Source of the DNA: Orbicella franksi | Lineage: Eukaryota | Direction: 5' to 3' | NCBI GenBank assembly: GCA_964199315.1 | Contig: OZ116699.1 | Location: forward strand, 24,428,001 to 24,492,000 | DNA: 64,000 nucleotides | Part shown: piece by piece, positions 18,854 through 21,718 of the stretch | Numbering within the stretch: the stretch's first letter is position 1 | Layout of the letters: each line of letters starts with the position of its first letter | Position numbers and translations under genes: made by a program | Notes under the pieces: generated by a model | Told to the model about the DNA's origin: nothing | The model's input: only the letters and a program-made list of their open reading frames with translations | Databases searched by the model: none

Positions 18854-21718
18854 TTAAGTTCCTCTTGGTTTTCTAATTGATCCTAAAATTTGAGTGAAAG
18901 TACCTAATCCGTTTGAAGTTGTCTCATACATTTTAGAGTTCGTAGTTGACCCACCAGCTATGGACGCTACACTTTGTCTATTGTTAGAGTCTTCTGCGTG
19001 TATTTTACCGAAGATTTTGCCACTCATACTATCGTTTCCATCTCCTGCTCCTCGGCCTTTTGCACCTCTGCCTTCTGCTCCTTTGCCCTCTACATCTGTA
19101 CTTGCGCCTACTTCCCCTACTCCTTTGTTACCTACTTTTCCACCAACTGTAATCTCACCAGTGGCTCCCCTACTATCTGCTCCTCCACTTCCAGCTGCTC
19201 TCCATCCTTCTCCTTGCCCGTCAGAGGCTTCTCCACCCCCTGCTGTTCCCCAGCTACCACCACCACCTCCTGCTTTTCCCCAACTATCACCATCACCTCC
19301 AGCTCCTGCTGTCCCCCAACTACCACCACCTCCTCCACCTCCTGCTGCTCCCCAACTACCACCACCTCCCTCACCAGCTCCTCCCCCGCCAGCACCTCCC
19401 CCACCAGCTGCACCACCACTAACTGCTCCTCCACCAGCTGCTCCCCCACCAGCTCCTGCCCCGCCAGCACCTCCTCCACCAGCTGCTCCCCCACCAGCTA
19501 CTCCCCCACCAGTTGCTCCTCCGCCGACAGTTCCTCCACCAACTGCGCCCCCGCCAGTTGCACCCCCACCACCGGCACCACCAACAACTGCCTCTGTACC
19601 AGCTGCAGCCCCACCCGCTGTTCCACCACCAACAGCACCCCCACCAGCTGCACCACCACCAACTGCTCCTCCACCAGCTACACCCCCGGTAGCTGCCCCA
19701 CCACCAACTGTGCCTACTCCGGCTGCTCCCCCACCAGCTGCGCCGCCACCAGCTGCTCCCCCAACAGCCCCTCCTCCACCCTCTCCTTCCCCACCAGCTG
19801 TTCCCCCACCAGTCTCTCTCCCACCTTTTCCACCCCCACCGGCTGCTCCCCCACCAGCTGCAACCCCACCGGCTGCTTCTCCACCAGCTGCACCCCCACC
19901 AGCTGTCCCTGCACCAGCCTCTCTCCCGCCCTCGCCTTCTCCGCCAGCTGCTACTCCACCAGCTACACCCCCAGTAGCTGCTGCCTCACCAGCTGCTCTT
20001 CCACCTCCAGCTGTTCCCCCACCAGCTGCGCCTCCACCTCCAGCTGTTCCACCACCAGTTACACCCTCACCTCCAGCTGCACCCTCACCAGCTGCACCCC
20101 CACCTCCAACTGCTCCACCACCCTCTCCTTCCCCACCAGCTGTTCCCCCACCAGTCTCTATCCCATCTTTTCCACCCCCACCGGCTGCTCCCCCACCGGC
20201 TGCTTCTCCACCAGCTGCACCCGCACCTGCTGTCCCTGCACCAGCCTCTCTCCCACCCTCGCCTTCTCCGCCAGCTGCTACTCCACCAGCTACACCCCCA
20301 GTAGCTGCTGCCTCACCAGCTGCTCTTCCACCTCCAGCTGTTCCCCCACCAGCTGCGCCTCCACCTTCAGCTGTTCCACCACCAGTTACACCCTCACCTC
20401 CAGCTGCACCCTCACCAGCTGCACCCCCACCTCCAACTGCTCCACCACCCTCTCCTTCCCCACCAGCTGTTCCCCCACCAGTCTCTCTCCCATCTTTTCC
20501 ACCCCCACCGGCTGCTCCCCCACCGGCTGCTTCTCCACCAGCTGCACCCGCACCTGCTGTCCCTGCACCAGCCTCTCTCCCGCCCTCGCCTTCTCCGCCA
20601 GCTGCTACTCCACCAGCTACACCCCCAGTAGCTGCTGCCTCACCAGCTGCTCTTCCACCTCCAGCTGTTCCCCCACCAGCTGCGCCTCCACCTCCAGCTG
20701 TTCCACCACCAGCTACACCCTCACCTCCAGCTGCGCCCTCACCAGCTGCACCCCCACCTCCAACTGCTCCACCACCAGCTGCTCCACCACCAGCAGCTTC
20801 ACCACCAGCTGCTCCCCCACCAGCTGCACCCCTACCTCCAGCTGCTTCCCCACCAACTGCTCCCCCACCGGCTGGACCCCCACCAGCTTTTTGGCCGTCC
20901 GTTTTCCCGCCAGCTTCTTTACCTTCCTCACCAGCGGCGGGAGGAAGACCAAGCTTGTCGGTTAACCAAGATGGTAGCCAGAGCTTTGGGCCTTCTCCAG
21001 GTGGTAGTGGAGCTGGAACAGGCTTAGCTACGATCAGTGTTGGCATCGTCCAGACGTCTTCCAGTTTTTTGCCATCGGAATTGCAGCAACAAGGACAACA
21101 TGGTGGCATCATGCATGATTGCGGTTGGCACGGCAAGCAATCAGAACATGGACAACCGCATGCTGAGGGATTAAAACAAGCCCCTCCTCCTCCACAAGGC
21201 ATGAAGCATATGGATCCATCATTTTCAGGAGAATCGCCAGACTGACCTTCGTTCATCTTTGCCTTGTGATTTCCATTATATTTATGCTTTTTCGCGTATT
21301 TTCTCGAATTTTCAAGATTATTATTATCATTAACATTATCCGAGTCAGTCCTTAAACTGTCCTCGAAGTCTCCGTCGTTGTCTTTTTCATTCAACGTCCT
21401 CAATGCGTTTTCCAAAATCATATATAGCTTCTTAAAATCCTCCCGTGAAATCTCATGAACTGGACCATCGGGTTTCTCCTCCTCCATTCTTTTGGTAACA
21501 GAAAAGCCATGGCCGTGTCTTTGAATCAACAGCACTGAATTTTCCATATGTCTTGAGTTACGAAACGTTTTAACAACTAGGCCATTGAAATCCTGAATTT
21601 GTTGTAAAAGTCTGTAAAAGGTAAAGTAATCATCTTGAATCGATTTGCCATTGTATCCTCCAGCTACCGCGAAGTAAAATAAAGTTAATAGTACAAAAGG
21701 CTTGGATGCGTTATACAT
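18854..21718 (-). CDS. Gene A: secreted 954-aa protein with Cys-rich block, Pro linker and ~600-aa Gly/Ala/Glu repeat domain
   Basis: Single ORF with a hydrophobic signal peptide (MYNASKPFVLLTLFYFAVAG), then CFMPCGGGGAC...CMMPPCCPCCC, then GGX/GAAGG repeats. Confidence 0.85.
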   Translation of the reverse strand: MYNASKPFVLLTLFYFAVAGGYNGKSIQDDYFTFYRLLQQIQDFNGLVVKTFRNSRHMENSVLLIQRHGHGFSVTKRMEEEKPDGPVHEISREDFKKLYMILENALRTLNEKDNDGDFEDSLRTDSDNVNDNNNLENSRKYAKKHKYNGNHKAKMNEGQSGDSPENDGSICFMPCGGGGACFNPSACGCPCSDCLPCQPQSCMMPPCCPCCCNSDGKKLEDVWTMPTLIVAKPVPAPLPPGEGPKLWLPSWLTDKLGLPPAAGEEGKEAGGKTDGQKAGGGPAGGGAVGGEAAGGRGAAGGGAAGGEAAGGGAAGGGAVGGGGAAGEGAAGGEGVAGGGTAGGGGAAGGGTAGGGRAAGEAAATGGVAGGVAAGGEGEGGREAGAGTAGAGAAGGEAAGGGAAGGGGKDGRETGGGTAGGEGEGGGAVGGGGAAGEGAAGGEGVTGGGTAEGGGAAGGGTAGGGRAAGEAAATGGVAGGVAAGGEGEGGREAGAGTAGAGAAGGEAAGGGAAGGGGKDGIETGGGTAGGEGEGGGAVGGGGAAGEGAAGGEGVTGGGTAGGGGAAGGGTAGGGRAAGEAAATGGVAGGVAAGGEGEGGREAGAGTAGGGAAGGEAAGGVAAGGGAAGGGGKGGRETGGGTAGGEGEGGGGAVGGAAGGGAAGGGAAGVGTVGGGAATGGVAGGGAVGGGAAGGGAVGGGTAGGAAAGTEAVVGGAGGGGATGGGAVGGGTVGGGATGGGVAGGGAAGGGGAGGAGAGGGAAGGGAVSGGAAGGGGAGGGGAGEGGGGSWGAAGGGGGGGSWGTAGAGGDGDSWGKAGGGGGSWGTAGGGEASDGQGEGWRAAGSGGADSRGATGEITVGGKVGNKGVGEVGASTDVEGKGAEGRGAKGRGAGDGNDSMSGKIFGKIHAEDSNNRQSVASIAGGSTTNSKMYETTSNGLGTFTQILGSIRKPRGT
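19780..20780. repeat. Three ~327-bp (109-codon) coding tandem repeats within gene A
   Basis: The marker ctctccttccccaccagctgttcccccaccagtctct recurs at 19781, 20123 and 20450. Confidence 0.9.

Follow-up and report, generated by a model that had tools for sequence, protein, structure and literature searches.

Cnidoin, the elastomer of the Hydra nematocyst, combines a signal peptide, a long propeptide ending in Lys-Arg (KR), a Gly-rich elastic core and Cys domains, and a long pro-region ending in KR has been described as typical of nematocyst proteins (PMC4321713). Its cysteine-rich domains (CRDs), which are of the minicollagen type, stand at both ends, and its repeat is a decapeptide of Gly, Gln, Met and Cys, QMQGCGQQXP (PMC4321713). 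Both cnidoin and spinalin were reported absent from a coral transcriptome and genome (PMC7430897), and the sea-anemone protein aneroin is described as Tyr-rich with beta-spirals (PMC6862824). Here, a 64,000-nucleotide stretch of DNA from Orbicella franksi (assembly GCA_964199315.1, contig OZ116699.1, forward-strand positions 24,428,001 to 24,492,000; hereafter the window) was analyzed, in which an intact, intron-less frame of 954 codons runs from ATG to stop on the minus strand at positions 18854-21718. The gene is transcribed, its architecture is conserved among corals, and it keeps its place beside a set of Cys-rich genes. With a probability of roughly 0.55, we read its product as a modular, disulfide-anchored protein with a disordered, acidic Gly/Ala spacer, part of a secreted or vesicle-built material. 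To our knowledge, little is known of which proteins make anthozoan capsules or other coral matrices elastic. If our reading is true, this gene is a concrete, expressed and conserved candidate, in which a cross-linking module, a docking hinge and a Gly/Ala spring of tunable length are joined.

A transcribed single-exon gene of modular layout

RNA-seq contigs from three independent studies were colinear with the DNA. Those of X1 cover 20479-21622 and 21657-21908, those of X4 cover 20832-21694 and 18332-19308, and those of X8 cover 18653-19805 and 20747-21230, together with pieces within the repeat. The unique N-part and the unique C-part each run into the repeats in these contigs, no intron is present in 18653-21908, and no joint removes the repeat, which the preliminary description had considered might be spliced out as non-coding. 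Positions 19000-21000 are 63-65% GC with a strong excess of C over G on the plus strand, and the flanking DNA is about 39% GC. The region of about 19806-20478 was covered only by short, patchy RNA pieces, as is expected where short reads meet 327-bp units that are 96% identical. Three near-identical units had been described earlier; the units themselves are present in the assembly (2.9 copies), but the exact count of three is unconfirmed since the RNA contigs break inside them.

Where the RNA contigs differ in length from the reference, they do so by multiples of three, namely by a skip of 45 nt and by insertions of 15 and 3 nt, and a single open frame is kept in the resulting variants of 939, 959 and 955 amino acids (aa), respectively. 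The 45-nt shorter form, at 19425-19471, was found in both RNA runs that cover the site (two studies), and the reference form in neither. The ends of the skipped piece read GT..AG on the gene strand, but the exact cut cannot be placed, since 29 letters align equally on either side. We read the skip as a repeat-unit length allele; it could instead be a micro-intron, although at 45 nt it would be an unusually small one. Immediately 3' of the gene, at 18317-18361, RNA word depth reached 400-950 in all three contig runs, 10-40 times that of the gene, and the contigs break there; the stretch probably belongs to a dispersed repeat or to some abundant transcript.

In translation, the order of parts proposed earlier (signal peptide, prodomain, Cys cluster, Pro-rich hinge) was found again as a leader, a conserved N-domain with the dibasic site KR77, a 14-Cys module and a Trp/Pro hinge. 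The hydrophobic N-terminus is present in all orthologues. All 14 Cys of the protein fall within residues 171-212, with none after 212, and the hinge is 18% Pro and carries three Trp (W223, W247 and W251), all of them invariant. The N-part (residues 1-280) and the C-terminal part are each single-copy in the genome, and an Rfam search of positions 17800-22400 gave no match.

The long tract of GGA, GAAGG and GEG that had been put at about 600 aa occupies about 580 aa (residues 271-850) and consists of 52% Gly, 25% Ala and 6% Glu, with one Pro, no Tyr and no Cys. The tract is acidic (44 Asp+Glu vs 17 Lys+Arg), with an isoelectric point (pI) of 4.2. The autocorrelation of Gly was +0.41 at lags 5 and 109 and -0.27 at lag 3, Gly occupancy was flat across the three mod-3 phases, and the longest G-x-x run was 21 aa. 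Given the flat triplet phase and these lag values, the tract is without Gly-X-Y collagen periodicity, in agreement with the preliminary description. Tandem Repeats Finder gave a base period of 15 nt over 19323-20888. The GGGSWG-type segment noted earlier corresponds to four SWG motifs, at W789, W801, W813 and W823, followed by GEGW at W839. Since Ala runs in the tract are only 2-3 residues long, poly-Ala beta-crystallites are unlikely. Compared with the orthologous sequences, the 109-aa higher-order unit is specific to the Orbicella lineage. The coordinates of these features are listed in Table 1.

Table 1 Features of the gene and its upstream neighbour in the window
Feature	Position	Strand	Basis
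Complete single-exon coding sequence, 954 aa plus stop	18854..21718	-	RNA contigs colinear without splice joints; orthologous uninterrupted open reading frames (ORFs) in L003 (852 aa), L002 (946 aa) and L004 (449 aa)
Minimum transcript	18653..21908	-	RNA contigs: 5' and 3' untranslated regions (UTRs) of no less than 190 and 200 nt, respectively; one contig extends to 18332, ending in high-depth repeat
Predicted signal peptide, residues 1-21 (hydrophobic core 8-19 after K6; A19-G20-G21 before Y22)	21656..21718	-	Read from sequence
Conserved N-domain, residues 22-115 (GFxV-T/S-KR dibasic site; helix motif FKKLYxILENAL)	21374..21655	-	Alignment, dN/dS, hhalign
Linker, residues 116-168, charged Asp/Asn/Lys, low conservation	21215..21373	-	Translation and alignment
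14-Cys module, residues 169-215, CCPCCC at its end	21074..21214	-	Cys count and spacing across orthologues
Hinge, residues 216-270: LEDVW..PTLIV.KP, Pro-rich stretch, LWLPxWL..LxLP	20909..21073	-	Alignment of six sequences, 42 columns invariant
Gly/Ala tract of low complexity, residues 271-850, with the pentapeptides GAAGG/AAGGG/GGGAA as its period, pI 4.2	19169..20908	-	Composition and autocorrelation
Three 327-bp (109-aa) higher-order units	19848..20808	-	Tandem Repeats Finder: 2.9 copies, 96% identity
Trp-containing end of the Gly tract, with GGSWG four times and GEGW once	19199..19363	-	Translation
Non-repetitive C-terminal part, residues 851-954 (104 aa), weakly conserved I.GKI ... KMY.T ... 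ILGS..K motif	18857..19168	-	Alignment; single copy in genome
Upstream ORF, 7 codons, overlapping the main start codon out of frame	21711..21734	-	Read from sequence
198-aa Cys-rich neighbour, upstream tandem partner	22442..23038	-	Same order and strand in Oculina L003, L004, L008

Conservation and the coding strand

An exhaustive phmmer search with residues 1-280 against 1.84 billion representative proteins matched ten proteins, and a profile search of 5.8 billion matched eleven, with E values to the orthologues of 1e-36 to 1e-142. Named orthologues came only from stony corals: a Stylophora pistillata protein annotated as “uncharacterized” (XP_022789516.1, 65% identity) and a partial Oculina patagonica protein (77%; ACROYT_G006675 locus). 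The remaining matches come from coral-type metagenome or Logan contigs, and no sea-anemone, Hydra or other match for the gene's own family was present among the 1.84 billion representatives. In a Pfam search, the protein and five cluster ORFs had no relevant match, and no family was reported at E up to 1; nothing of relevance came from two PDB sequence searches, and an ESM Atlas search by features gave no usable match. As judged from these searches, the gene appears to represent a previously uncharacterised family, so far found only in stony corals, and its features are all present here: the GFxV(T/S)KR N-domain, the FKKLY helix, the 14-Cys module, the LEDVW..PTLIV..LWLPxWL hinge and the Gly/Ala tract.

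The Oculina orthologue (L003 9650-12208) has a near-perfect (GGGAA)n tract, SW motifs and a related C-terminus, and in the L002 orthologue the Gly tract is more degenerate. Tract length varies between about 120 and 640 aa, with about 120 aa in L004, about 550 aa in L002 and about 630 aa in Oculina and Orbicella (about 580 aa if residues 271-850 are counted), and the orthologues of Oculina, L004 and L002 carry Trp-containing Gly motifs in a corresponding position. In the N-domain, G71, F72, V74, K76 and R77 are invariant, as is the FKKLY..IL..A helix, and the basic sites besides KR77 are not conserved. The count and spacing of Cys are the same in Orbicella, Oculina and L004 and near-identical in L002, and the hinge LEDVW..PTLIV.K...LWLPxWL..LxLP is essentially invariant. 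Compared with Oculina, the ratio of nonsynonymous to synonymous substitution (dN/dS) was 0.16 at a dS of 0.82 for the N-part (first 262 codons), vs 0.76 over 69 codons for the C-part, where constraint is weak. Given the invariant residues, the Cys spacing and these two ratios, selection keeps the N-domain, the Cys module and the hinge tightly, and in the Gly/Ala tract only the composition.

Two plus-strand frames, of 783 and 663 aa, are also open across the repeat and end with it, and the public annotation of Oculina has a 620-aa antisense gene there. The minus-strand frame might accordingly be viewed as a by-product of GC-rich simple sequence, or the true product sought in a plus-strand Pro-rich frame such as the one annotated in Oculina patagonica. 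We consider this scarcely credible: only the minus-strand Gly frame continues into the conserved unique N- and C-terminal parts, in four assemblies, every observed indel is a multiple of three, and the N-part is under purifying selection. The plus-strand Pro/Ala frames arise because GGN and GCN codons automatically read as Pro and Ala on the opposite strand, and the plus-strand Pro-rich ORFs were rejected as such mirror frames.

The consequences for public records are systematic. In Oculina patagonica CM126636.1 (L003:9650-12208), the locus is annotated as a 167-aa partial protein together with the opposite-strand gene, whereas the true frame is uninterrupted over its 852 aa, and the Stylophora RefSeq model XP_022789516.1 is truncated at 428 aa. 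Because the records either truncate the gene or annotate its antisense mirror frame, the gene is probably missing or misassigned in expression atlases.

Cys-rich neighbours and the possible site of action

The order 198-aa Cys-rich gene, this gene (same strand) and Hsp70-like gene (opposite strand) recurs in Oculina. In L004, the 198-aa gene lies directly upstream of the orthologue, and in L008, Cys-module genes lie further upstream, as in the window. RNA of the 198-aa neighbour was present in the same studies as that of this gene. Exons of the Cys-module family lie in the window at 27362-27808, 34805-35416, 36313-36966 and 40294-40641, all on the minus strand. A profile of the family, whose signature is GACVNNP..CQWPCMWPCCC..PPKFKFKPLKP, matched four loci in the genome, all of them in this cluster, and did not match this gene. 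Family relatives were found in Pocillopora, Oculina, Actinia tenebrosa (“keratin-associated protein 5-5-like”) and Nematostella (LOC116617360), and in the proteins of this neighbour family, the Cys/Gly-rich mature parts are immediately preceded by KR or RR. The cluster mentioned in the preliminary description is supported as a conserved group of Cys-rich genes by the order of the Cys-module genes, the 198-aa gene, this gene and the Hsp70-like gene.

By hhalign, residues 83-114 of the N-domain aligned with the 198-aa neighbour over 32 columns (probability 83%, E 9e-6), and BLASTP of the N-part against the same neighbour was not significant. The neighbour in turn shares the motif PPKFK..PLK..C.CP with the Cys-module family (90%, E 2e-6), so that the link of this gene to that family appears to be an indirect one, running through the 198-aa neighbour. 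With partners conserved in this way, a joint test of the idea that the cluster makes one material is feasible.

Two further observations concern the neighbourhood. Downstream of the gene, three plus-strand ORFs at 14893-17444 hold the Hsp70-like coding pieces, in the same arrangement as in Oculina (L003 16389-18586). An acidic-leader gene (41664-42320, minus strand), taken together with the module at 40294-40641 and a GGYG exon at 39531-39773, appears to be the counterpart of Nematostella LOC116617360, which has a similar signal peptide, acidic pro-region, KR and module.

We propose the following mechanism. The predicted signal peptide would take the chain into the secretory pathway. Because it holds one invariant dibasic site, the N-domain may be a pro-region, with KR77 as the candidate convertase site. 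The 14-Cys module and the Trp/Pro hinge would fold, or become cross-linked, through disulfide bonds and anchor the protein in a matrix, and the acidic, near-Pro-free Gly/Ala pentapeptide tract of about 580 residues would be disordered and serve as a flexible or elastic spacer, of which selection would keep the composition and approximate length, not the exact sequence. The Trp-bearing end and the small C-terminal part may provide a second contact. The material is probably built jointly with the products of the neighbouring Cys-rich genes, and as the leading candidate for the site we would guess at the capsules used for stinging or ensnaring, in their wall or tubule.

More specifically, the protein could be an anthozoan functional stand-in for Hydra cnidoin, an elastic, disulfide-linked component of the nematocyst or spirocyst wall and tubule, made in developing stinging cells with the Cys-, Gly/Tyr- and His-rich neighbour products. 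We regard this as possible but on balance doubtful. The layout parallels that of cnidoin (PMC4321713), which is not recognisable in corals (PMC7430897), the N-domain holds an invariant KR, KR or RR precedes the mature parts in the neighbour family, this family is common to corals and sea anemones, and the composition is like that of disulfide-hardened matrices. Against this, the protein has neither a canonical minicollagen CRD nor a C-terminal Cys domain, and its own family found no sea-anemone or Hydra match among the representatives searched and is therefore not a general anthozoan capsule component. Moreover, one poly-A run gave zero reads on the gene, though stinging cells are continuously renewed.

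The main rival to a capsule site is a role in the skeleton or anchoring matrix, which we consider unlikely. Here the protein would belong to the extracellular framework of the calcifying or anchoring interface, as a silk-like acidic Gly/Ala gel like that of the mollusc shell framework, released from skeleton-forming or anchoring cells. The restriction of named orthologues to stony corals and the acidity of the tract are consistent with such a role, and with only 17 Lys/Arg in 580 aa the tract is hard to see in tryptic proteomes and would largely escape tryptic skeleton proteomics. However, the linked neighbour family is present in sea anemones, which have no skeleton, and the protein is without the Asp-rich blocks typical of coral acid-rich proteins, save for the short linker. 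Neither the Stylophora accession nor the locus was mentioned in the main texts of the literature searched. Nor did the gene or the neighbour family come up in the cell atlas of Stylophora, in the matrisome paper on Nematostella, with the supplements searched for each, or in the papers on cnidocyte development that were covered.

Several observations weigh against the reading of a disulfide-anchored protein with a disordered spacer. The AlphaFold2 model of the N-part, from a 6-sequence alignment, reached a mean confidence score (pLDDT) of 35 and was unusable. Homology of the Cys module to that of the neighbours, convincing by eye, was not borne out by the tests (hhalign 16%; Smith-Waterman z 1.8-3.1 vs composition-preserving shuffles). 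At a Gly fraction of 0.52 and with hardly any Pro, the tract is somewhat below the Pro+Gly level usually quoted for true elastomers, reportedly after Rauscher et al. 2006. It could therefore be silk- or gel-like rather than rubber-like, and we hold such behaviour to be equally possible. The evidence for gene activity comes from bulk coral RNA runs only, and since the poly-A RNA run X23, which carries the same species label, had zero reads on the gene, expression is not universal across samples.

Signs of dispensability point the same way. Two public contigs lack 25 nt shortly ahead of the Cys module (window about 21186-21212; L005:1080-1300), with TG microhomology at the deletion; one of these contigs matches the window exactly in the part that was compared, and the other is slightly diverged. 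The deletion shifts the frame to give a 194-aa product and is possibly a segregating null allele. In addition, the L007 orthologue (L007:7905-9722) needs two frame changes, and the L008 orthologue (L008:8001-8402) ends after the N-domain, adjoining an opposite-strand 7tm_1 gene. These defects are either lineage decay or assembly errors, and given the frameshifted and truncated copies, the gene may be dispensable in some lineages.

Such tolerance of frameshift alleles, the low complexity with its rapid change in length, and the predicted signal peptide with a conserved dibasic site would also suit a secreted product of a non-structural kind: a gland or mucus component, a condensate protein of secretory granules, or a precursor cut at basic sites. 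We consider this minor alternative quite improbable, as the conservation of the 14-Cys module and hinge goes far beyond what a simple carrier would require and the basic sites besides KR77 vary.

Comparison with known structural proteins

The protein shares with cnidoin a predicted signal peptide, a long N-part with KR, a Gly-rich low-complexity core and a Cys-rich potential for cross-linking; the hydrophobic leader and the invariant KR77 are seen here, and cleavage at KR77 is only predicted. Unlike cnidoin, it has a single Cys module, which is non-canonical, holds 14 Cys and lies on the N-terminal side; its repeat is a Gly/Ala pentapeptide, free of Cys. A regular-expression search for the CRD pattern CX3CX3CX3CX3CC found none in this protein or in three orthologues, and no sequence relation to cnidoin was detectable by phmmer among the 1.84 billion representatives. 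Membership of the cnidoin family was therefore rejected, on the missing canonical CRD and C-terminal Cys domain, the different repeat and the lack of a database match, and the comparison with cnidoin drawn in the preliminary description comes down to a resemblance of layout.

Like minicollagens, NOWA and other CRD proteins of the capsule, the protein has a Pro-rich stretch after a Cys-rich module and would probably assemble through disulfide cross-links. However, it has no CX3CX3CX3CX3CC, no Gly-X-Y helix and a period of 5 rather than 3. A Gly-X-Y core flanked by poly-Pro and CRDs is not found here, and the protein is not a minicollagen. Spider and insect silks are similar in their Gly/Ala-dominated repeats, higher-order units and rapid evolution of repeat number. 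Spidroin membership was nevertheless rejected, since Pfam searches at E up to 1 and PDB searches found no N- or C-terminal spidroin domains, and the protein is unrelated by descent to spider silk, with whose GGX repeats it had been compared earlier. In contrast to aneroin, the tract has no Tyr and one Pro.

The tandem cluster of ultra-high-Cys, Gly/Tyr and Gly-rich genes recalls the mammalian clusters of keratin-associated proteins (KRTAP), loricrin and the cornified envelope, although the latter encode cytosolic proteins without signal peptides and the likeness is compositional, with homology not shown. A more far-reaching, speculative and rather unlikely idea is that of a convergent kit, in which a conserved cluster of ultra-Cys, Gly/Tyr, His/Cys and Gly/Ala genes would make the hexacoral capsule or another hardened secreted material, with this gene as its elastic, disulfide-anchored element. 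The cluster would then be a secreted counterpart of the mammalian KRTAP system, and the protein a functional equivalent of cnidoin in stony corals.

The preliminary description had suggested that the protein may be the elastic filament component of the cluster's material. The gene, its leader, the Cys module, the non-collagen tract and the conserved Cys-rich cluster all stand, and membership of the cnidoin and spidroin families is not supported; the suggestion of an elastic filament is plausible in form and unproven in substance. In molluscs, the shell framework proteins lustrin A and MSI60 combine Cys-rich and Pro-rich modules with long Gly- or Ala-rich elastic or silk-like tracts. The present protein has such a combination of modules and tract, as in a secreted matrix, but these proteins belong to another phylum and have no sequence relation to it, and a skeletal link is here only a candidate. 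Judged by its layout, then, the protein resembles a known kind, the Cys-anchored, Gly-rich secreted structural proteins; what is new is the coral-restricted family.

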